Shown here one piece after another: positions 3,041 to 63,747 of a stretch of DNA of 64,000 nt. The first letter of the stretch is position 1; each line of letters opens with the position of its first letter. Where the stretch lies: positions 1-64,000 of IMG/VR virus record IMGVR_UViG_3300020471_000004; one strand, written 5' to 3'. A program made the translations under genes and the position numbers. Under the pieces are notes generated by a model. It saw nothing but the letters and a program-made list of their open reading frames with translations. It did not search any database and was not told where the DNA came from.

Positions 3041-4000
3041 TTAACGGGTACCTACGTCTGCAATACCGCCTTTTTCAAGGCCTTCACTAACATACACTTT
3101 AGCAATACCTAGGCTTTCTAGAATATCTCGGTAACGGTCTGCTACAAATTCAGCTAGGTGCTCTACTGTAGTTTCGCAATCCAGTATGATGCAGTCTTGC
3201 TCTTTTACTTTTTGGAGCATTGCACCACGAGAGCTGGTGTACTTGATAGTAACCCAACCGTCTGCAACTTCGGTAACGTTTTCTGACCAAGCAAACACAA
3301 CACCGTCTAGCTCATTCACTATCTTTCTGACTTCATCTGAATAAAGTTCTCTAGAGCCGGGCCAGAAGCTAGTAGTTTCCCAAATAGAAGGCGATTCTTC
3401 AAAAGCGATATAGCTTATGTGACCGTGTGCTATGTTCTGGCAACCGAATGACGTTGAGTTTTTAAGACCATGTGTGTATCGGAAAACAAAACCGTTAAGT
3501 TCAGGCACACAGAACGCAGGATAACTCATGTTGTTGGTAAGCTTGACTTCTATTTCGATAGCTTGACCGTCTTGTGCAAACTTTTCTACCAAGTAATCAC
3601 CAATAGCATTTTCCCAGGCATCAATTAGATTACACATGTTTAGAGTCTGCTGTTCTTCAACTTCGAGAATTCTAAAACAGTTCGAAGGTGCAATTACAGT
3701 AGTGTGAGGAGTAGTTACTTCAACAACATCATTATGGAAGCGGTTAACTTCAATACCCATTTCAGGATGAACTGTAACCCAGCATTTGTGGTCAAAGCCC
3801 TGACCTTCGTGATCGTCAATCCAGCTTTTGATTCTTTTCTTGGCAGTACTGAAATCAATTAGTACCGCTTCTTCTGGATCTTCGGTACCTGACATTTTAA
3901 CATGTAGGTTAAAGCTGTCACCTCTTAATTTTCCCCCAGGTACGAACATTGCCAGATCGATGTTCGTAAGATTTGCGTAATACATTTGTACTTCTTTCAT
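3041..4000 (-). CDS. QueD/6-pyruvoyl-tetrahydropterin synthase-like protein, tandem T-fold type
   Basis: 319 aa with IDFSTAKKRIK..FDHK and YTHGLK..GCQNIAHGH and TTVEHLA motifs of long gammaproteobacterial QueD-like proteins. Confidence 0.75.
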   Translation of the reverse strand: MKEVQMYYANLTNIDLAMFVPGGKLRGDSFNLHVKMSGTEDPEEAVLIDFSTAKKRIKSWIDDHEGQGFDHKCWVTVHPEMGIEVNRFHNDVVEVTTPHTTVIAPSNCFRILEVEEQQTLNMCNLIDAWENAIGDYLVEKFAQDGQAIEIEVKLTNNMSYPAFCVPELNGFVFRYTHGLKNSTSFGCQNIAHGHISYIAFEESPSIWETTSFWPGSRELYSDEVRKIVNELDGVVFAWSENVTEVADGWVTIKYTSSRGAMLQKVKEQDCIILDCETTVEHLAEFVADRYRDILESLGIAKVYVSEGLEKGGIADVGTR

Positions 4001-55923: not shown

Positions 55924-56649
55924 CTATACCAAAACAATATCAGCAGAGACCAAAGTCAGGCTGTTCATTGCATCTTGGTGAAGTCCGTTATCTCGGTCAG
56001 GTTCAGTAACAGAAGGATAAACGTGATTAGAAGTCAAGTCTCCCCAACTGGCATCCCCTAGGTGGTCAGTGAGCAAGGTATTACCTTCATCAGAAGTACC
56101 GTACTCGATAACTACTGCTCTACCTGTAGTCGCTAAACGTGTAGCAGGAACTTCATCATGCATTTCATCATGCGGAAGAGGATCACGCGCATCTGATAAA
56201 GTAGGGTCACCTTCACCGATAGCTACAGGGTCACCTGGATTTGTAGGAGTAACAGTAAGCGTAACCATACCGAGTGCGTCCGTAGAAGAATCAGGAGTGC
56301 TAGGAAGAATATCGTCACCAGAATCCCAAAATTGGTCTTCCCAAAGGTCAACGTACTGAGTAATTTCAACCCACGTATGTACAGTATTGCCACTTTGAGG
56401 AGTAGCTTTTGACTCTCTTCGGTATACTGTCAGGTAATCTGACTTAGACGAATCAAATTGGACCCAAAGAACGTTAAGAGGTAACGTTAAATCGTGCGGC
56501 TCTGTTTTTGCAGCAACTACAGTAGTGGTTTTAGCAATAACAGGATTTGTTCGGCGTACAATAACAGGTTGAGTGTGGCTCTCAATATCTGCGTAATCTC
56601 TAATATCGTGAACAAAGTCACGAAGTTTTTGTGCTTGCTCAGTAGCCAT
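55924..56649 (-). CDS. putative fibre/attachment protein (paralogue)
   Basis: EP..L.LPLNVLW, Y..V.RR.SK, D..LSDAR.P..H motifs. Confidence 0.65.
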   Translation of the reverse strand: MATEQAQKLRDFVHDIRDYADIESHTQPVIVRRTNPVIAKTTTVVAAKTEPHDLTLPLNVLWVQFDSSKSDYLTVYRRESKATPQSGNTVHTWVEITQYVDLWEDQFWDSGDDILPSTPDSSTDALGMVTLTVTPTNPGDPVAIGEGDPTLSDARDPLPHDEMHDEVPATRLATTGRAVVIEYGTSDEGNTLLTDHLGDASWGDLTSNHVYPSVTEPDRDNGLHQDAMNSLTLVSADIVLV

Positions 56650-56660
56650 AGGATGCTCCT

Positions 56661-57305
56661 TTATGCAATATCATCTGGTGTAATTTTACGCCATTCAAGG
56701 TCACCTGAAGGAGTAAACATCAAAGCAGCGCTAACCTGTGCAATACTATTTAGAATATTACCGTGACCTGCCGAGTGTGCTAACATAGTAGCAGGTTTCT
56801 CTACGTGCGTGTGTGACTTAGGTACTCGGTTATCGCTCATTCGGGGGTCATCAGACACAATGAACACAGGCTGGTTAGGGTCTGTAGGGTCAACACTGAT
56901 TCGTGCTTTACCTGGGCCTTCTACACTAGCGTAAGGTACTGGTGTAACACCTACCAGTGCCAGATCAGAAGGGTCATAAGTTTGGTCTTCAAGAATATCC
57001 TCATAGAAGTAAAGAACTTCCCAATCTTGAGTAATACCTTCCGAACCGAAAGAACCTGGTGATTTAGATACTCGACGTAATGCTTGTTTGTACAAAGGGC
57101 TATCTGCTCGATAACATATCCATACAACGTTTAAAGGGAGAACCATATTAATAGGTTCTCCCTGGCTGCAAACAATCGCAATAGTACGATTGGTGTGTAC
57201 GTCAGTATGCCTCATAACTATCGGTGTATCTTCGGAAACGTTTTTAACATCTGATAGTTTTTCAAGAGTGTTAATTAGTTTCTCTAGTTTTGATTCCATA
57301 CCCAT
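56661..57305 (-). CDS. putative fibre/attachment protein (paralogue)
   Basis: EP..MVLPLNVVW, YK.ALRRVSK, DPRMSDNR.P..H.H motifs. Confidence 0.65.
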   Translation of the reverse strand: MGMESKLEKLINTLEKLSDVKNVSEDTPIVMRHTDVHTNRTIAIVCSQGEPINMVLPLNVVWICYRADSPLYKQALRRVSKSPGSFGSEGITQDWEVLYFYEDILEDQTYDPSDLALVGVTPVPYASVEGPGKARISVDPTDPNQPVFIVSDDPRMSDNRVPKSHTHVEKPATMLAHSAGHGNILNSIAQVSAALMFTPSGDLEWRKITPDDIA

Positions 57306-57316
57306 AATATTTTACC

Positions 57317-58963
57317 TTACGCGTCTGTGGCTGTAGAGCCAGTAGGGTTTACATTAAAGACAACGTGAATACGCTTGGCTGCAATAACAGGATCCATATA
57401 CATGTCCAGAATCACATCACCGTTAGCAATAGTGTCGTTGGTGTTGTTACGCGAATCACAGATATTTGTAAACTCGTAAACACCTTGACCTCTACGGATA
57501 GGCTCTAGAGTGCTATCAGCAATAGCTTTCATTCTGTCACGCAATAACTGGTCATTCGGACGGAATACTCCAATCTTACTACTGCGTACCATTGTTTTAA
57601 GTACGTGCTTGACTAGTCTAACAACGTTAACGTATTGGAAAGACGTAGCCTGTGTTTGAGTAGTAGACTGACCCCAGATAACGTTACCTTGACCTCGAGG
57701 CATTTTGCGAATCGGATTGATTTGCGCCTGGTCTAGTGCGTTACGTGCGCCTTGGTCATAGTGGACTCGCATACCTAAAACACTTAAAGAGCCTAGTTCG
57801 ATACCTGCAGGAGCAAACCATAAAGCACGGTCATTATCTGCTTTTGCAAATGCGGCAGCTACGTAACCTGAAGGCGGCACATAGATTTCTAAGTCATTAG
57901 CAGAGTCATATACCAACACATCACTTGAATAGATAGCACACGCATGGCTAGACATATTAAGGATGTTTTTCTTGTAGTTGATTGCATCGGCAACTTCTTG
58001 CATGTCGCTAGGCATATCAAGAATTGCTATACAGTCATTACGGGCTAGCGCAATTTCGTTCATTGCATGTTGCACAGTATGGTGAGTGTAACCACCGTTA
58101 ACCATAATATCAATATCGATTTCTTCCGGGTCGCTGTAATTTTCTTGCCACGCTTCAATGATTTGGTCATTGGTAACAGGTAGTCCGTCAGTACCTCCAT
58201 CGAGCTGTACACTAGCGGTATTGACAATATCAAACTCAGGACAAAGAGTATTGTTTCGACAACGAACGAGATTAGATTTCTTGTTGATTACTTCTTCAAT
58301 ATGCAACTGGTTACCAGCTTCATCTGATTCGTAATGGCGAGTAACAAGGAAACTTTCATCAGGCGCAACGTTACCTGTAGGTTTAGTACGGTAAACATCG
58401 ACATAGAAGTATAAGGGGTTATGACCGTTACCGCGTAAAGCAACACCGATAGGGTTAGATGGGCGTACAACGATAGTAATACCGTTGTTCCATTGACCGG
58501 GGTCTATTGCGCAGAAGTAGCAAGGTAAGCTCGTAACACCAGGCGTAGTAGGAGTAAATCCGTAAGTATTAAGCGGATCATCTTTACCTTGAGCATTGCC
58601 TGTGGCAGAGTCTTTGAATACAGTAAGGGCAAGTTGAGGATTTTGTGCGTTAACGTCATCCACACTTAACATTGCGCCTGCTGTGAGAGCGCCGTTAACT
58701 ACGCGAGTAACGTAACACATGCTTGATTGGTTTAAGAAAGGTTCAACAGAGTATGCCATGTAACCGTAGCTAGGGTCACCAAAGCCGAATTTAGCTTTGT
58801 ATTTTGCAAAATCTGTTACCAGGGTACGTTGACCAACAGGGCCACTAGGAGCAGCACCTACAAATGCAGCAATAGAGCTTGGCGCATTATCAGGTCTTTC
58901 GCTGAGGTCTTTGATATAACTGTAGACCCCGTAAGCTGGATTTGATGGGTTTATTGTAGACAT
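57317..58963 (-). CDS. tail sheath protein 2
   Basis: GVY, GPVG, YVTRV, DCIAILDMPSD, VPPSG, WFAPAG, IWG, NNTNDTIANGD motifs shared with sheath 1. Confidence 0.92.
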   Translation of the reverse strand: MSTINPSNPAYGVYSYIKDLSERPDNAPSSIAAFVGAAPSGPVGQRTLVTDFAKYKAKFGFGDPSYGYMAYSVEPFLNQSSMCYVTRVVNGALTAGAMLSVDDVNAQNPQLALTVFKDSATGNAQGKDDPLNTYGFTPTTPGVTSLPCYFCAIDPGQWNNGITIVVRPSNPIGVALRGNGHNPLYFYVDVYRTKPTGNVAPDESFLVTRHYESDEAGNQLHIEEVINKKSNLVRCRNNTLCPEFDIVNTASVQLDGGTDGLPVTNDQIIEAWQENYSDPEEIDIDIMVNGGYTHHTVQHAMNEIALARNDCIAILDMPSDMQEVADAINYKKNILNMSSHACAIYSSDVLVYDSANDLEIYVPPSGYVAAAFAKADNDRALWFAPAGIELGSLSVLGMRVHYDQGARNALDQAQINPIRKMPRGQGNVIWGQSTTQTQATSFQYVNVVRLVKHVLKTMVRSSKIGVFRPNDQLLRDRMKAIADSTLEPIRRGQGVYEFTNICDSRNNTNDTIANGDVILDMYMDPVIAAKRIHVVFNVNPTGSTATDA

Positions 58964-59067: not shown

Positions 59068-60165
59068 CTATCGAGCGCCAACAGCTCTACGAGCCATCAA
59101 CATCATTGTGCTGAATCGGTGGTGCAGTAAAGTTTTTACAGTAAGATTAGACTCCATCAAATGTTTCAACTTTTCTAAGTCAGTAACAGAGCCGTCCATT
59201 AAGAAAATGTCGTGTCCCATTACTAACTCAGGATGGCTGCAACGGTTTGCTAGTAAAGGTAAACAATCGTAATACATAGACTCTGCAATACAGTATCCGA
59301 AGTTTTCTTCTATTGAATGAGAAATCATTACCTTAGATTCAGCAAGAACTTTGTAGTACTCTTTCTTAGAAAGTCCTGCCTTTATTGTTACTAAACCTTT
59401 GGCGGCTAAAGCTTCTGCTTGACTTATCAAAGAGGGGTTGTTGCCTCTAAACGAAGACCTGCTGGTACAGATTACAATTTCACAACTGGGGTCTATATTG
59501 TTTTTGTAGTCTAGTGCTAGGTAAACACTTTGCATTGGACGTTTTTCAGTATCAAATCGATTAGGTAAAACAATTTGATTCTTTTTGGCTTTAACTTCTA
59601 CGCCCACATCAAACTGATCTTTAAACAGCGGGTTACCTGACACATAGATAATCTCAGAGATTGTTTGTTCAAGTGCCTGATCACCTATTGGTTTTACCCG
59701 TCTCTCAATAAAGGCGTTTTTATGGTACATACTACCAACAAATACCTGGTCACAAGCAAGAACCCAGCCTAGCTCAGTATAACGCTGATAAGACTCTGCG
59801 ATACTAAACGCATCTTCTACGGTGTAAGATGCTGCGTGAAGAAAGCCTGTGATTCTAACATTAATGCCGTTCATCTGGGACATTAATCGTACAGACTCTA
59901 GACCCCAGAACTCTATATCCCCGAAGAAAAAAGAATCTCCTTCGCTTACTTGACCTGAATTAAATAAAGCGCTTATCTTTTGCAACTGCACCATCTTATA
60001 GTGAATGGTACTGTTAATATCAAGGAAAGTACCTACAACAACTTCATCTTGCAAGGGAGTGCCGTCAATAATAACACAGTCATCAAAATACCCAGGTATT
60101 AAGTCATACCATTGTTGGGTGTACCGCTCTTCGAGAGGCTCTATAGGCACATAAAATACTGTCAT
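59068..60165 (-). CDS. GT-B (GT4-like) glycosyltransferase
   Basis: NRFDTEK and EENFGYCIAE (E-x7-E) motifs. Confidence 0.82.
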   Translation of the reverse strand: MTVFYVPIEPLEERYTQQWYDLIPGYFDDCVIIDGTPLQDEVVVGTFLDINSTIHYKMVQLQKISALFNSGQVSEGDSFFFGDIEFWGLESVRLMSQMNGINVRITGFLHAASYTVEDAFSIAESYQRYTELGWVLACDQVFVGSMYHKNAFIERRVKPIGDQALEQTISEIIYVSGNPLFKDQFDVGVEVKAKKNQIVLPNRFDTEKRPMQSVYLALDYKNNIDPSCEIVICTSRSSFRGNNPSLISQAEALAAKGLVTIKAGLSKKEYYKVLAESKVMISHSIEENFGYCIAESMYYDCLPLLANRCSHPELVMGHDIFLMDGSVTDLEKLKHLMESNLTVKTLLHHRFSTMMLMARRAVGAR

Positions 60166-60566
60166 AGCTCTTGGTCTCCTTCAAAATCCTCAGGAACTGT
60201 TTTGTATGCGCTTTCTACAGCAAAAGCATTTACATGTAAATCGCGATGAAATTTAATCTGGTCTGTAGGTTTAAGAAACCAGTAAGAGTCAGATTCAACG
60301 TGAAGCATTATAGATACCTCGTCAGGCCATTTCTCTGTAACCTGAGTAACTTCAAGAGTTATAAACATGCCTTGGTCTATTAGCCAAGCTAAATCTGAAG
60401 AAGAAGGATCAAGAGTGTTATCGTGGTCGCTTACGTAAATTGCTTTTACGCTAGATAATGTTTTATCATCTGCAAAAAGTGCTCTAGCACCAACTAGCTC
60501 TTGTGCATCACAAAAAAGAGTCTTAATACCTTTTAAGCGCCCTTCTACTTCTATTCCGATTTTCAT
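60162..60566 (-). CDS. hypothetical protein of the glycosyltransferase cluster
   Basis: GIEVEGRLKGIKTLF N-terminus; ATGA-coupled to the GT-B gene. Confidence 0.7.
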   Translation of the reverse strand: MKIGIEVEGRLKGIKTLFCDAQELVGARALFADDKTLSSVKAIYVSDHDNTLDPSSSDLAWLIDQGMFITLEVTQVTEKWPDEVSIMLHVESDSYWFLKPTDQIKFHRDLHVNAFAVESAYKTVPEDFEGDQEL

Positions 60567-60574
60567 AATGTACC

Positions 60575-61237
60575 TTAGTAATTGTATGTTAGTTGTTCTT
60601 TGTTGTAAGTAACGCTAAACCCTGAGAAAGGGTAGCTATTCAAAAAGAATGCCGCTGCCTGGTCAAGATTGGTTACTTGTTGTAGACCTGTGAAGTCATG
60701 TTTAGTTCCTACCGGACACTTTACAGAAAACGTAACCATATCTCCTGAGTGTGTCATTATGCGGCTTGAATACGCATAGATCATATCACTGGGTACGCAA
60801 GACTCGAACAACCAATACTTTTCGTCTTCAAACAGAGAAGCCTGACTAGGATATAACTCTAGCAAAGCTTCTCTCTTTTGTTTTTGTTGATCAGGTTCTA
60901 GCACATCAAACTCTACATTCATATCGATAGAGTAATACTGAATGTTAGAGAAATAACGCTTGGCAATATTGTTTACCATCTTGTGGTGAACGTGATTATC
61001 GCCGATGTTAGGGGCAAGAACAGGAGTTTCTGAATCAAAACGACTTCTTATAAACTTCTCAGGATCGCCGTCTGAAAAGTAAATAGGTATGCTGTACTTG
61101 TCCGAGAAAGTTTGTGCTTCGGCTATTCTGTCTTCAAACAAATCAAAGAAGTAAACTACGGCAGTTACTTCTTGATTAACTATTTGTCTCCAACAGCCGA
61201 TAAGCTCGTCATCAACATGAGGTGCTAGAACTATCAT
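60575..61237 (-). CDS. PIG-L/LmbE family N-deacetylase
   Basis: LAPHVDDELIGC, DNHVHH, YPSQ motifs. Confidence 0.85.
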   Translation of the reverse strand: MIVLAPHVDDELIGCWRQIVNQEVTAVVYFFDLFEDRIAEAQTFSDKYSIPIYFSDGDPEKFIRSRFDSETPVLAPNIGDNHVHHKMVNNIAKRYFSNIQYYSIDMNVEFDVLEPDQQKQKREALLELYPSQASLFEDEKYWLFESCVPSDMIYAYSSRIMTHSGDMVTFSVKCPVGTKHDFTGLQQVTNLDQAAAFFLNSYPFSGFSVTYNKEQLTYNY

Positions 61238-61791
61238 TAAAATACCTTAATAAGGTTATGCTCACCTGTATATTCAGGAGTAAGATAAATGCCTTGTGAC
61301 TCTAGGTAATCAAATACGTCTTGGTCAGTCCAGTCGTAAATAGGATAGACAAACGTAAGACCAAACATAGAATTCTCTAAAACAGGAGGCATATCTTTTC
61401 TGTTAATGTCTTGTCCATCTACCATCACAGTAGTGCATTTAACAGTACGGTCGTACTCTGCTCTGCGTGAACCGTCAATCTGCGCTTTGTAACCACAACG
61501 GTCAACATGGTCTTCCATGTGACTGCGGTGTACAAAGTTTACGTCCTGACCTTGAACTGCCATAGCATAAAGCAAGTTAACAGTATAGGGGTGTGTGTCA
61601 GGATAACCTTTAGCGTTGTGTACCCATTCAATTGAATTAGGGCCATTTTCTTGTTCAAACAAGTGTCGGACACATACGCTATCTTTTCCGCCTGATGTGC
61701 CGCCGTATATAGCAGATAATCCGAATCTGCCTACCGCTTCTGCAATAATAGCTTTTGCATTCTCTACCTTAGCTGCAAGTTCTTTATTCAT
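61237..61791 (-). CDS. PAPS reductase family (PP-loop) protein
   Basis: SGGKDS, GSRRAE, PIYDWTDQDV..Y. Start MNKEL at 61791 inferred from overlap. No C-terminal ECG motif. Confidence 0.8.
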   Translation of the reverse strand: MNKELAAKVENAKAIIAEAVGRFGLSAIYGGTSGGKDSVCVRHLFEQENGPNSIEWVHNAKGYPDTHPYTVNLLYAMAVQGQDVNFVHRSHMEDHVDRCGYKAQIDGSRRAEYDRTVKCTTVMVDGQDINRKDMPPVLENSMFGLTFVYPIYDWTDQDVFDYLESQGIYLTPEYTGEHNLIKVF

Positions 61792-62575
61792 CAGAATTTC
61801 CCCAAGTTTTTCCCGGAACGTCTTTTGTCCACAGGTCATTGTTTAAGTGAGAACCGGTACGGTCAGTGTGATAAGCATTTGCTACCAAGAACTCTAGGTC
61901 GGAGTCAAACAGCGAGCATATAAATACATCTACTCCTCTTTGACCTTTAGGCCAGCTTTTTAGTTTAGCCATTGCTTCTGCATTATTCTTTACAGATTTA
62001 GCAGACACCATAAAAGAGCCGCTGCTTAGACCTCGATTAGAAATATCGATAGCTACGTTGTGCTCTGTCTCTACATAATGCTTGTGTAGATAAGGCTTTG
62101 CTTGAGACAAACTGGTTGCCTTTTTTATCGCGTGTCCTATATCGAAGGGTTCATGTAAATAAGGATCCCAATCTGAATATTTTCTACGGTTAATCACTTC
62201 GTAAAATCCGTATAGGCATGCGCTACGTCCGTACTCTGCATGTTTAATCAAAGCATTACTTGTGATAGCAGGGACCAAAGAATCGTCATCTACACTTATC
62301 CAGTAATCTGCATCTGTACATTCCAGCATGTGGTGGTACATGTAAGCAAGAGACTTATCAGAAGAGTGTTTATGTACCACAAAGTCACTATCTCTACAAT
62401 GTGCTAGTGCACCTAGAGTATTCAAATAGTGGTCTATCGTTTCTGTTTCAAGAAAGTTAAGATTCATAACAAACTCGATACCGCCTTGATTGGTAAGTAT
62501 GTTGGTTGCAGCAGCATACACATCAATAAAACGGTCTACACTTGCACAAGAGGTGCTAAACATTATTCTGTTCAT
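61784..62575 (-). CDS. putative GT-A glycosyltransferase
   Basis: ADYWISVDDDS (DxD), GSFMV, GVD, late His; cluster context. Confidence 0.6.
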   Translation of the reverse strand: MNRIMFSTSCASVDRFIDVYAAATNILTNQGGIEFVMNLNFLETETIDHYLNTLGALAHCRDSDFVVHKHSSDKSLAYMYHHMLECTDADYWISVDDDSLVPAITSNALIKHAEYGRSACLYGFYEVINRRKYSDWDPYLHEPFDIGHAIKKATSLSQAKPYLHKHYVETEHNVAIDISNRGLSSGSFMVSAKSVKNNAEAMAKLKSWPKGQRGVDVFICSLFDSDLEFLVANAYHTDRTGSHLNNDLWTKDVPGKTWGNSDE

Positions 62576-62579
62576 ATGG

Positions 62580-62939
62580 TTATTCCCAAGTAAAGTCTAC
62601 ACGCGAACCGCATTCGCCGTCTTCTGAAACATCAACATAGAAGTTTCTTCTAGGATACTTTTCAGAGATATAAAGACCTAGGTCTTTGCACAACATTTCA
62701 CAGCTTTTGTGGTTTATGTCAATAGCGCCTGAGTCTAGTTGAGATTCTAGTTCTTCTTGGAACATGTGAAACTCTATCTCACGGTCATCGTGAAATACTT
62801 CGATACCGATTTCAAACTTAAACAAGTGTCGGTGTCGGGACTTCAAATACTCTACTTGATCAGGAGCATCAGGGTAGAAGTGAAAACCTTTACGTTGAAA
62901 GCGAACATAAATGGAAGTCTTTTGTTTTAAAATAGGCAT
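62580..62939 (-). CDS. QueD-like single T-fold protein
   Basis: GFH.YP.AP, HRHLF, HDDREIEF, SCEM, VSEDGE.G motifs. Start MPILK at 62939, 1 nt after the upstream stop. Confidence 0.7.
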   Translation of the reverse strand: MPILKQKTSIYVRFQRKGFHFYPDAPDQVEYLKSRHRHLFKFEIGIEVFHDDREIEFHMFQEELESQLDSGAIDINHKSCEMLCKDLGLYISEKYPRRNFYVDVSEDGECGSRVDFTWE

Positions 62940-62940
62940 A

Positions 62941-63747
62941 CTATTCCTCGAATGTGAATTCATCACTGTCTGTAGGCGAAACAAAAACACCAGAACGGTG
63001 CATTTCTATTTTGCGTTTATATATTGCTATCTTTTCTTTACAGAATTCGATAGTGGCGTTGAGCATGTTAAGATAAAACACGCTAGCTACTCTAGACCCA
63101 TGCAAAGTATACATGGTCATAACAGGATAGAATTCATCCTTCTTTATGTCTTCTATCTGATATTCAATTTCTGAGATTTTTATTTCTAGTTGTTCTTTCT
63201 CTACTGCTCTTTGCTCAAAGTCAGGACGGTTCTTTAAGTCTTTAAGGTAATCGGCTCGTGCTTTCTTATCAAAGACCAGTTTATAGATAGCTTTTAATTC
63301 ATCTAGGTCAAGCAGTTCGTATGCTTCAACAGCACGATGGTAAAAGTCTACCTTGCCTGAATCCCCTACTTTATCTGGATGTGTTTCGTTAACTATCTTT
63401 CGGTAGATCTCTCTGCAAATAGACTGGTGTGCTTTTGATATATCCCTTTCGTCTGCTTTGAAATCGTTTCCTTCCTCGTTAAGGTAATCGTCTTCATCTT
63501 GGTCTAGATCAGAACGCATCTGGGCACTGGTAAGTCTATCGAACTCTTCGGATATATCACTAAGCTCTGCCATCAAGCGCTCTTTTTCGGCAGCTTCCTC
63601 AATATTAGCACTGTCTACAATATCTAAAACTTCTTCATGGAGAACATTTAAAGCTTTAAGCTCTTTTTGTGAAGAAGCCAATAACTTTTTAAGTTTCGAA
63701 ATTTCTGAAACACTGACTTTGTAGGGATCGTACAGTACAGGTAACAT
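62941..63747 (-). CDS. J-domain (DnaJ-like) protein with flanking coiled coils
   Basis: YRKIVNETHPDKVG..F..A.EAYELL. Confidence 0.78.
   Translation of the reverse strand: MLPVLYDPYKVSVSEISKLKKLLASSQKELKALNVLHEEVLDIVDSANIEEAAEKERLMAELSDISEEFDRLTSAQMRSDLDQDEDDYLNEEGNDFKADERDISKAHQSICREIYRKIVNETHPDKVGDSGKVDFYHRAVEAYELLDLDELKAIYKLVFDKKARADYLKDLKNRPDFEQRAVEKEQLEIKISEIEYQIEDIKKDEFYPVMTMYTLHGSRVASVFYLNMLNATIEFCKEKIAIYKRKIEMHRSGVFVSPTDSDEFTFEE

Follow-up and report, generated by a model that had tools for sequence, protein, structure and literature searches.

Phage 7-deazaguanine DNA modification systems combine the guanine-exchanging enzyme DpdA with FolE, QueD and QueE and with QueC, Gat-QueC, QueF, DpdL, DpdM or DpdN (Hutinet 2019; Cui 2023; PMC10516641), and none of the eight bases described for these systems carries a sugar. 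Sugars on 7-deazaguanines are found in other settings. In eukaryotic tRNA, mannosyl- and galactosyl-queuosine are RNA modifications built on the queuosine cyclopentenediol, and in the actinomycete secondary-metabolite pathways of huimycin and dapiramicin, which act on free bases and have no DpdA, the GT4-type HuiG uses UDP-GlcNAc to place GlcNAc on a 7-deazaguanine and HuiC is a methyltransferase (PMC7439116). In roseomycin biosynthesis, likewise an actinomycete secondary-metabolite pathway acting on free bases without DpdA, the QueC-like RoyL makes amides on the carboxyl of 7-carboxy-7-deazaguanine (CDG) in an ATP-dependent reaction through AMP-CDG (bioRxiv 10.64898/2026.04.15.718813). The glycosylated DNA bases known so far, namely glucosyl-hmC of T4, base J and glycosylated 5-hydroxycytosine (PMC13326640), are pyrimidines whose sugars serve as anti-restriction hypermodifications, and to our knowledge a glycosylated purine analogue in DNA has not been described. 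In mycothiol and bacillithiol biosynthesis, a GT4 glycosyltransferase (MshA/BshA) is followed by an LmbE deacetylase (MshB/BshB) and an ATP-dependent ligase (MshC/BshC); PIG-A/PIG-L in GPI anchors and BtrM/BtrD in aminoglycosides follow a similar scheme.

Here, we describe a six-gene cassette in a marine jumbo phage that shares the precursor pathway, a TGT-family DpdA and the lack of QueC with the published DpdL subgroup, but adds a conserved set of enzymes not mentioned in that work: a GT4 GT-B, an LmbE-fold hydrolase, a CysD-like PP-loop enzyme and a cluster-less QueE-like domain, plus a GT-A here. The window analyzed comprises 64,000 nucleotides (positions 1 to 64,000 of IMG/VR record IMGVR_UViG_3300020471_000004), and the cassette occupies positions 59068-62939. 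A sequence-only reading had proposed six contiguous or coupled genes with clear catalytic motifs at this position, and this observation was confirmed: six consecutive minus-strand ORFs (g1 to g6) are separated by gaps and overlaps of -8 (or -56) to +8 nt, and thus are translationally coupled or nearly so. The cluster is more than 99% identical, with no indels, in contigs of several marine and coral-reef metagenomes, and all six genes have dN/dS values of 0.04-0.11 against a diverged relative with the same gene order, indicative of purifying selection on functional genes.

The first gene, g1 (62580-62939, minus strand), starts with an ATG at 62939, one base after the stop of the upstream gene, and encodes a protein of 119 aa, the length also given by an independent gene call in a relative. 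The sequence-only reading labeled it QueD-like; it has no Pfam hit, but carries LKSRHRHLF, matching the published LxxxHRHxF signature of DpdL (PMC10516641), and is therefore identified as DpdL, a T-fold QueD/PTPS paralogue predicted in the literature to be a CDG decarboxylase, rather than QueD. It hits phrog_17812 (E 1e-27), is 47% identical to the gene next to QueE in Acidovorax phage ACP17 and 51-55% identical to the genes of phages X1 and BCSR5, and has a dN/dS of 0.04. The fourth gene, g4 (60575-61237, minus strand), encodes a metallohydrolase of the LmbE/PIG-L fold (residues 1-150) followed by a 70-aa C-terminal beta-beta-alpha-alpha-beta-beta extension; the sequence-only reading had called it an N-deacetylase. 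The Pfam PIG-L profile matched only weakly (E 0.06), but a structural model (pLDDT 87) compared with the PDB using Foldseek returned only LmbE/PIG-L family members at the top, namely BshB (6ull, E 1.6e-5), TT1542, BC1534, chitobiose deacetylase and teicoplanin Orf2. The fold also houses non-deacetylases, with GalB hydratase among the hits. The APHxDDE and HxxH motifs are invariant (P6, H7, D9, D10, H82 and H85), and D80 is present in at least 90%.

The third gene, g3 (61237-61791, minus strand, with an alternative start at 61839), encodes a PP-loop ATP pyrophosphatase of the PAPS-reductase/CysD/FAD-synthase superfamily (PF01507, E 1e-6). The motifs SGGKDS, HN and QxDG, along with an E, an R and a W, are invariant in the family; the C-terminal ECGLH-type redox Cys of CysH is absent, as the sequence-only reading had stated, and no Cys is invariant. 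The family profile hits CysD (1zun, E 1.7e-9, over its full length) and FAD synthase (E 8e-9), whereas QueC is matched only at E 0.72; DndC, which the sequence-only reading had cited as a PAPS-reductase-fold precedent, is ruled out as the identity (TIGR03183, E 0.13). The fifth gene, g5 (60162-60566, minus strand, 134 aa), which the sequence-only reading left as unknown, is a truncated QueE-like domain without the radical-SAM cluster, there being no CxxxCxxC motif. Its model (pLDDT 93) placed three QueE structures on top in a wide structural search with VIA-align (Z 6.6, 5.9 and 5.8), and a shape search of the Atlas put a QueE cluster on top (TM 0.67, 133 of 134 residues aligned). Profile-profile comparison with hhalign linked g5 to cluster-less QueE-like domains (Prob 91.6%, E 8e-7), and those domains to canonical QueE (Prob 92.7%, E 4e-7). 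Among its conserved acidic residues, E6, E8, E23, E72 and D131 are invariant, and D47 and D102 are present in at least 90%.

The sixth gene, g6 (59068-60165, minus strand, 365 aa), is the signature gene of the module and encodes a GT4-type (retaining) GT-B glycosyltransferase (PF00534, E 6e-8) with an invariant EX7E motif (E287...E295), whose profile hits GT4/GT5 GT-B enzymes including MshA. In metagenomes, at least 408 protein clusters of this family were found, none with a specific name, and one pattern scan of 185,579 prokaryote genomes did not find the family. In contrast, g2 (61784-62575, minus strand, 263 aa), a GT-A-like glycosyltransferase, is a lineage-specific accessory and not part of the conserved core. 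Its support from sequence is weak (PF00535, E 0.084), but in a search of the Atlas with language-model features (scores 0.96-0.98) every named neighbor is a GT-A family, and a VDDDS (DxD) motif is present. Only two close homologues were found among 5.8 billion proteins, and none in BCSR5 or X1, although the gene is conserved in relative L056 (L numbers denote related phage loci) with a dN/dS of 0.11.

The sequence-only reading correctly stated that no DpdA, QueC, QueE or FolE lies in the window, and had proposed, as a test, a search of the rest of the genome for these genes or for hydroxymethylases. This search located FolE at 64915-65604 of the genome, starting only about 900 nt beyond the end of the window, QueE at 71354-72193, and a TGT/DpdA homologue at 113551-115128, whereas no QueC was found. 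The DpdA homologue is 53% identical to the protein of phage NCTB, the nearest relative, that passes Pfam TGT; its family profile hits only TGTs in the PDB (best ArcTGT, E 1.5e-14), and DSGGFQ is invariant. Within the window, a tandem-domain QueD (CPH4 synthase, 319 aa) is encoded at 3041-4000 on the minus strand, matching PF01242 in two stretches (E 2.9e-8, 34 bits against a cut-off of 22.4) and TIGR03367 (QueD) at E 1e-6, below its cut-off; it is 58% identical to its NCTB orthologue. NCTB shares FolE, QueD, QueE and DpdA at 53-58% identity, and its gene between a DnaJ-like gene and the tail sheath is queC (PF06508, E 6e-10), exactly where the cassette sits here. These findings bear on the possibility that DpdL alone serves the DNA pathway, giving dDG, and that g2-g6 are an unrelated glycosylation unit acting on a host surface glycan, a virion protein or another DNA base, in line with the alternative protein or glycan acceptors that the sequence-only reading had left open. 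The cluster does lie next to tail genes, and GT4 plus LmbE pairs normally act on small molecules or lipids. However, the neighborhood of the tail sheath is merely the variable slot that holds queC in NCTB, the only thymidylate-synthase-family gene is an ordinary ThyA shared with NCTB, so there is no hydroxymethyl-pyrimidine acceptor, and g3-g6 travel with FolE, QueE, DpdA and DpdL in unrelated phage backbones, with two of them fused to deazaguanine-pathway domains. We consider this explanation highly unlikely.

Homologues of g6 were identified in 35 phage loci, comprising 32 IMG/VR loci plus Xanthomonas phages X1 and BUDD and Burkholderia phage BCSR5, nearly all inside 7-deazaguanine clusters. 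Within 8 kb, LmbE is encoded in 31 of these loci, DpdL in 27, g5 or a QueE-like domain in 25, FolE in 24, the PP-loop protein in 22, and QueD and QueE in 20 each; no QueC was found in 560 kb of flanks. LmbE is fused to DpdL in 18 loci, and the PP-loop protein to a cluster-less QueE-like domain in L030, L038 and L046. A subset of loci (L028, L033-L036) lacks the PP-loop protein and g5, so the core chemistry cannot depend on them. DpdA lies directly adjacent in at least 11 loci, and in ACP17 a g6 homologue lies directly beside DpdL and DpdA is likewise adjacent to the module. This adjacency, together with the replacement of queC in a phage whose relative has the full dPreQ0-type DNA pathway, argues against the cassette making a diffusible small molecule, such as a huimycin-like glycosylated 7-deazapurine or a glycosylated pterin (as in biopterin glucoside or limipterin), for host take-over or as a cofactor. 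This alternative draws on the huimycin cluster, which combines FolE, QueD, QueE, a SAM methyltransferase and a GT4-type GlcNAc transferase acting on the free base, on the methyltransferase between LmbE-DpdL and the GT-B in L033-L036, and on the descent of DpdL and the QueE-like domain from enzymes that bind free pterins or deazapurines. It appears unlikely, given also that radical-SAM QueE argues for a deazapurine rather than a pterin, and that the family, unlike natural-product clusters, was not found by one pattern scan of 185,579 prokaryote genomes.

Another possibility is that the sugar is only transient, with GT4, LmbE and the PP-loop enzyme building and removing a handle that enables the difficult decarboxylation or amidation of CDG, so that the DNA ends up with a known, non-glycosylated base such as dDG or dADG. 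The DpdL-bearing Cellulophaga phage phiST has dDG in its DNA, and DpdL alone with DpdA did not give dDG in E. coli, leading the authors to raise the possibility that other enzymes are required (PMC10516641); the LmbE-DpdL fusions place a hydrolase next to DpdL, and DpdA resembles that of the QueC-bearing relative. However, no g6 homologue was found in Cellulophaga phages (E<=1e-10), so the phage shown to carry dDG seems to lack the module. We know of no precedent for such a route. Extra glycosyltransferases recur in the clusters (GT-A here and a second GT-B in L017 and L024), which makes sense for building a glycan rather than a leaving group, and this reading, too, is considered unlikely.

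The interpretation favored here, with moderate confidence, is that the cassette is an uncharacterized tailoring module of the phage 7-deazaguanine DNA-modification system that branches from CDG and probably produces an amino-sugar-decorated base. The core inference of the sequence-only reading, a DNA-hypermodification operon tied to the QueD/7-deazaguanine pathway in which a sugar is added and de-N-acetylated, is thus supported, and the acceptor pathway that it called unproven is encoded by the same genome; the protein and host glycan acceptors now look unlikely. The gene identities and folds, the queC slot swap, the conserved neighborhood, the fusions and the purifying selection rest on direct evidence from this analysis, whereas CDG as the substrate, the sugar, the linkage (C7-carboxamide or exocyclic N2), the final base, the order of steps, and whether tailoring occurs on the free base or on DNA are inferences, no chemical or expression data being available for any member of the module. 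As in mycothiol and bacillithiol synthesis, three fold classes are combined in one operon: a retaining GT4 with EX7E, an LmbE-type metallohydrolase with BshB as its best structural match, and an ATP-using nucleotide-binding alpha/beta enzyme. This suggests GlcNAc transfer, de-N-acetylation and then acylation of the freed amine, although the similarity is at the fold level only (15-18% identity), the ATP enzyme is a PP-loop protein rather than an aaRS-like ligase, and the acceptor and acyl group would be deazapurine-derived, not inositol, malate or cysteine. HuiG and RoyL provide precedents for the glycosylation and amide-forming steps, but homology to either was not examined.

In this view, the genome makes CDG with FolE, QueD and QueE and carries a DpdA that swaps guanine in DNA for a 7-deazaguanine, and where NCTB converts CDG to preQ0 with QueC, this phage has replaced queC with the cassette. 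At 53% identity to that of the QueC-bearing relative, however, the DpdA gives no sign of a pocket remodeled for a bulky base. The PP-loop enzyme g3, working with the QueE-derived ligand-binding protein g5, would activate CDG with ATP, a role analogous to that of QueC or RoyL, although g3, being closer to CysD and FAD synthase, may adenylate something other than a carboxylate, and a structure-based test of a g3-g5 complex yielded no verdict in either direction. The GT-B g6 would then transfer an N-acetyl-hexosamine, although GT4 enzymes use many donors and the donor sugar here is unknown, and g4 would de-N-acetylate that sugar. DpdL would bind or process the deazapurine moiety; if, as proposed, it is a CDG decarboxylase yielding plain 7-deazaguanine, the carboxyl handle needed for an amide-linked sugar is lost, and DpdL and the PP-loop step cannot both act on the same carboxyl. 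The GT-A g2 would probably add a further, lineage-specific sugar. The end product would be a sugar-bearing (amino-sugar) 7-deazaguanine in virion DNA that blocks restriction and other nucleases.

The window is the first 64 kb of a 232,692-bp contig of a marine jumbo myovirus whose tail sheath is 73% identical to that of Phage NCTB and 43% identical to that of Pseudomonas phage PaBG. At 59068-62939, six minus-strand ORFs (g1 to g6) follow one another with gaps or overlaps of a few bases, between a DnaJ-like gene (62941-63747) and the tail sheath gene (57317-58963). The DnaJ-like gene, upstream of the cassette, encodes a J-domain protein of 268 aa that scores PF00226 at E 1.8e-5, just under the cut-off, and is conserved in NCTB (33% identity) and 99% identical in a diverged relative (L056, an ENA contig). 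Downstream of the sheath lie two adjacent paralogous genes (55924-56649 and 56661-57305), both of which hit phrog_13325 and a PHROG annotated as HNH endonuclease or tail protein; the first is annotated as a structural tail protein in PaBG. Megablast of the cluster against 50,697 phage records found no match, but the cluster recurs at more than 99% identity, without indels, in contigs of marine and coral-reef metagenomes from several studies. L056 has the same gene order, and against it the six genes give dN/dS of 0.04-0.11, like the sheath gene. The operon observed in the sequence-only reading is thus confirmed, and the genes are functional. A scan for promoters and terminators found nothing above the shuffled background.

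The first gene (g1, 62580-62939), previously called QueD-like, has no Pfam hit but reads LKSRHRHLF, the LxxxHRHxF signature, in place of the CxxxHGH of QueD, by which Cui et al. (NAR 2023, PMC10516641) defined DpdL, a QueD paralogue that they proposed, without proof, to decarboxylate 7-carboxy-7-deazaguanine (CDG). As in other DpdL-bearing phages, the gene occurs together with DpdA, FolE, QueD and QueE but no QueC. It is 47% identical to the gene beside QueE in Acidovorax phage ACP17, one of the two phages whose dpdL was expressed in that work; decarboxylase activity was not demonstrated there and was not assayed here. The second gene, g2, looks like a GT-A glycosyltransferase, given a weak match to PF00535 (E 0.084), a DxD motif, and Atlas feature-search scores of 0.96-0.98 with only GT-A families among the named neighbours, although it has just two close homologues in 5.8 billion proteins and none in related clusters. 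We first suspected that the 263-aa g2 was the orthologue of the equally long NCTB gene in that slot, but it is not, and the NCTB gene is QueC.

The third gene, g3, encodes a PP-loop enzyme (PF01507, E 1e-6) with an invariant SGGKDS, the family profile of which matches CysD over its full length (E 1.7e-9) and FAD synthase (E 8e-9), but QueC (3bl5) only at E 0.72. The absence of the redox Cys noted from the sequence alone was borne out, as no Cys is invariant in 16 family members, the C-terminus ends before the ECGLH motif of CysH, and the CysH NCBIfam models score far below their cut-offs; g3 is therefore neither a CysH nor a thiolase. It is not a DndC either, the example of a PAPS-reductase-fold protein named in the sequence-only reading, because TIGR03183 scores E 0.13 (11 bits against a cut-off of 290) and the neighbors are deazaguanine and glycosyl genes rather than dnd genes. 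The protein may work like QueC, but it is not a member of that family.

The fourth gene product, g4, was modeled with pLDDT 87, and the top 25 Foldseek matches in the PDB are all LmbE/PIG-L family members, with BshB (E 1.6e-5), TT1542 and BC1534 first, in line with its earlier assignment as an N-deacetylase. Residues P6, H7, D9, D10, H82 and H85, the metal and catalytic residues of the family, are invariant in 23 homologues, and TT1542 matches both the (A/P)HxDD and HxxH motifs. However, g4 does not reach the gathering score of PF02585 (E 0.06, 14 bits against a cut-off of 28), and the profile of its N-domain against PDB sequences was only marginal (TT1542 at E 0.033, with a His-tag artefact on top), whereas a canonical PIG-L in a related locus (L041) passes the Pfam threshold at 33 bits. 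The C-terminal 70 aa of g4 (60575-60784) are predicted as beta-beta-alpha-alpha-beta-beta (strands 152-161 and 167-175, helices 182-187 and 191-201, strands 208-211 and 216-219; pLDDT 60-76), which is the topology of a T-fold unit. This extension aligns to the place where relatives carry a fused DpdL domain but lacks HRH, and may be a decayed DpdL domain that still docks onto the separate g1.

The fifth gene product, g5, left as unknown in the sequence-only reading, was modeled with pLDDT 93. QueE came top in two independent structure searches, a wide VIA-align search (Z 6.6, 5.9 and 5.8 for three QueE structures) and an Atlas shape search (TM 0.67 over 133 of 134 residues), and profile comparison links g5 to a family of cluster-less QueE-like domains (Prob 91.6%) and those to canonical QueE (Prob 92.7%). 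The link holds only through the intermediate family, as direct hhalign of g5 gave Prob 1.6% against canonical QueE and 9.9% against the single paralogue of locus L029. An Atlas feature search was uninformative (at most 0.84), and Foldseek against the PDB gave only weak RibD/DHFR-like hits (E about 0.01, TM below 0.41), which were set aside in favor of the QueE matches obtained by three other routes. The protein keeps the N-terminal E-x-E-G...G-x-x-T-L-F region that corresponds to the QGEG motif of QueE, but has no CxxxCxxC motif or other cluster cysteines, so that it is QueE-derived and is not a QueE. The sixth gene, g6, encodes a GT4-type GT-B glycosyltransferase, with PF00534 above the cut-off (32.9 bits against 26.4), an invariant EX7E (E287 and E295), and profile hits in the PDB including GlgM, WbaZ, MshA and TreT. 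No structures were predicted for g2, g3, g6 or DpdA.

A search of the rest of the genome for dpdA, folE, queC, queE or hydroxymethylase genes had been proposed at the outset as a check on the hypermodification reading, and it recovered most of the pathway. FolE (64915-65604 of the contig; PF01227, E 3e-45) lies about 900 nt beyond the end of the window, and QueE (71354-72193; phrog_2076, E 6e-55, with QueE NCBIfam models as best hits below their cut-offs) lies next to the DNA polymerase gene. A tandem-domain QueD (PF01242, 34 bits, above the cut-off) is inside the window at 3041-4000. A Pfam TGT search and a search with the DpdA protein of Xanthomonas phage X1 both found nothing in this genome, but the NCTB orthologue led to a 525-aa TGT-superfamily protein at 113551-115128. 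This protein gets no Pfam hit on its own, but it is 53% identical to the NCTB protein, which passes Pfam TGT at E 1.5e-8, and a profile led by it hits only tRNA-guanine transglycosylases in the PDB (best E 1.5e-14), with DSGGFQ invariant. A 306-aa ORF overlapping FolE (64005-64925), just outside the window, was first suspected to be DpdA, but it has no Pfam, PHROG or PDB hit and is left unassigned; it is conserved in NCTB (BN7874_255, also 921 bp) and in L056, and could be a further pathway component. QueC (PF06508) was not found in the genome. This absence is not absolute, because a GT-B 99% identical to g6 sits on a 250,004-bp contig and NCTB and PaBG are about 258 kb, so that the present record (CheckV estimate 93%) probably lacks some 17-25 kb. 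The only thymidylate-synthase-family gene (220921-222330) is an ordinary ThyA whose core is shared with NCTB, with an N-terminal extension of about 95 aa and an internal insertion that splits the Pfam match in two; there is therefore no sign of a hydroxymethyl-pyrimidine acceptor, and a pyrimidine hydroxymethylase as an alternative acceptor source is rejected. With these genes in the same genome, the interpretation of the cluster as a DNA hypermodification operon tied to the 7-deazaguanine pathway is supported, although no nucleosides of virion DNA were measured, as only metagenomic contigs are available.

NCTB shares FolE, QueD, QueE and DpdA with this phage, at 53-58% identity for QueD, QueE and DpdA. 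Its single gene between the DnaJ-like gene and the tail sheath is QueC (PF06508, E 6e-10, above the cut-off), and the present phage has the six-gene cassette in exactly that position and no queC. PaBG has neither QueD, QueE nor a TGT hit. The simplest reading is that an enzyme consuming CDG (QueC) was exchanged for another set of enzymes consuming CDG. A weak QueC-like match (E 6.6e-4, below the cut-off) is present in phage X1 at 107011-107325, far from the module; if it is real, module and QueC are not strictly exclusive.

Homologues of g1, g3, g4, g5 and g6 are collinear, at 30-55% identity, in Burkholderia phage BCSR5 and Xanthomonas phage X1, in both of which they lie between FolE, DpdA and QueE, and they also occur in phage BUDD. 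A scan of IMG/VR with g6 returned 32 loci, and the addition of BCSR5, X1 and this phage gives 35. Within 8 kb of the GT-B, LmbE is found in 31 of these loci, DpdL in 27, g5 or a QueE-like domain in 25, FolE in 24, the PP-loop gene in 22, canonical QueD in 20, QueE in 20 and an X1-type DpdA in 11, and no QueC was detected in 560 kb of these flanks. In 18 loci, the LmbE domain and DpdL are one polypeptide. In loci L030, L038 and L046, the PP-loop domain is fused to a roughly 190-aa cluster-less QueE-like domain, which is a separate ORF in L032, L037, L039 and L042, and in L029 a cluster-less QueE paralogue occupies the place of g5. More distant g6 homologues (25-27% identity) sit directly beside DpdL in ACP17 and in Sinorhizobium phage Phosso. 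The fusions, the DpdA adjacency and the queC swap argue against two alternatives, namely that the product is a diffusible huimycin-like or pterin glycoside, which we consider unlikely, and that g2-g6 act on an unrelated acceptor, which we consider less likely still.

Variable extras of the module, seen across loci L033-L036, L027, L032, L039-L041, L017, L024, L006, L029 and L031, include a SAM methyltransferase between LmbE-DpdL and the GT-B (L033-L036), small radical-SAM proteins of roughly 250 aa and of 456 aa, a second GT-B (L017 and L024), an AAA_28 NTPase, the canonical PIG-L of L041 and, in L031, a second complete QueE with its cluster, which suggests a family of different end products. 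The recurring extra glycosyltransferases, together with the apparent absence of the GT-B from the phage shown to carry dDG, argue against a further alternative, that the sugar is transient and the final base is a known one such as dDG, a possibility that we likewise regard as unlikely. The g6 family has at least 408 protein clusters at 90% identity in public metagenomes, many on contigs of 100-300 kb, and none carries more than a generic name. A scan of 185,579 prokaryote genomes for g6 relatives found none, but it used a single degenerate pattern and is weak negative evidence.

While the gene identities and folds, the slot swap, the conserved neighborhood and the fusions come directly from the analysis, the mechanism is inferred. 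The module consists of two remodeled queuosine-pathway ligand binders (DpdL from QueD, g5 from QueE) attached physically or genetically to two catalytic partners (LmbE and the PP-loop enzyme), plus a GT4. The fold trio of GT4, LmbE and an ATP-using alpha/beta enzyme is the logic of mycothiol and bacillithiol synthesis, in which GlcNAc transfer and de-N-acetylation are followed by ATP-dependent acylation of the freed amine; BshB is the best structural match of g4, and MshA is among the profile hits of g6. Two precedents exist for deazapurines: the GT4-type HuiG transfers GlcNAc to the 2-amino group of a 7-deazaguanine (PMC7439116), and the QueC-like RoyL makes amides of CDG through AMP-CDG (bioRxiv 10.64898/2026.04.15.718813). 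In our preferred model, g3 with g5 would activate the CDG carboxyl, g6 and g4 would provide a de-N-acetylated amino sugar, the two would be joined, or alternatively the sugar would be placed on N2, g2 would extend the glycan, and DpdA would put the base into DNA either before or after tailoring. A structure-based prediction of a complex of g3 with g5 returned no verdict and counts neither as support nor as evidence against; candidate bases were not docked into DpdA of this phage or of NCTB, nor was a DpdA phylogeny compared with the presence of the module. The role of DpdL is the weakest point, because decarboxylation of CDG, as proposed, would compete with an amide route, whereas its frequent fusion to LmbE suggests instead that it binds or processes the sugar-deazapurine conjugate. 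Some loci lack the PP-loop gene and g5, so that GT4 with LmbE-DpdL is the minimal core. We have moderate confidence in the general statement that this is a CDG-branch tailoring cassette giving a sugar-bearing 7-deazaguanine in DNA, and clearly less in any particular linkage.

With DpdA, FolE, QueD, QueE and DpdL all present, the system belongs to the phage 7-deazaguanine DNA-modification systems, but the GT4, LmbE, PP-loop and QueE-like tailoring set is not described in the defining papers, and full-text searches on DpdL, on 7-deazaguanine with glycosyltransferases, PAPS reductase, deacetylases or sugars, and on phages ACP17, BCSR5 and X1 found no description of this module. It is possible, although somewhat less likely than not, that the module installs a new hypermodified DNA base, a 7-deazaguanine carrying an amino sugar, extended by a second sugar in this phage, and made from CDG by recruited paralogues of the queuosine enzymes (DpdL from QueD and a cluster-less QueE) together with the GT4/LmbE/PP-loop trio. 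The module is present in hundreds of uncultured phages, many on large contigs, and in the cultured phages X1, BUDD and BCSR5; because these and ACP17 are cultured, the hypothesis can be tested directly. Eight 7-deazaguanine derivatives are described in phage DNA, none of which carries a sugar, and a sugar-bearing version would extend DNA glycosylation from pyrimidines to a purine analogue, apparently for the first time. Such a base would entail new enzyme chemistry, with a radical-SAM scaffold reused without its cluster and a T-fold fused to a deacetylase, and would help explain why DpdL could not be reconstituted alone. It would also matter for the evasion of restriction and other nucleases, for sequencing and cloning of such phage DNA, and for choosing phages for therapy against Xanthomonas and Burkholderia.
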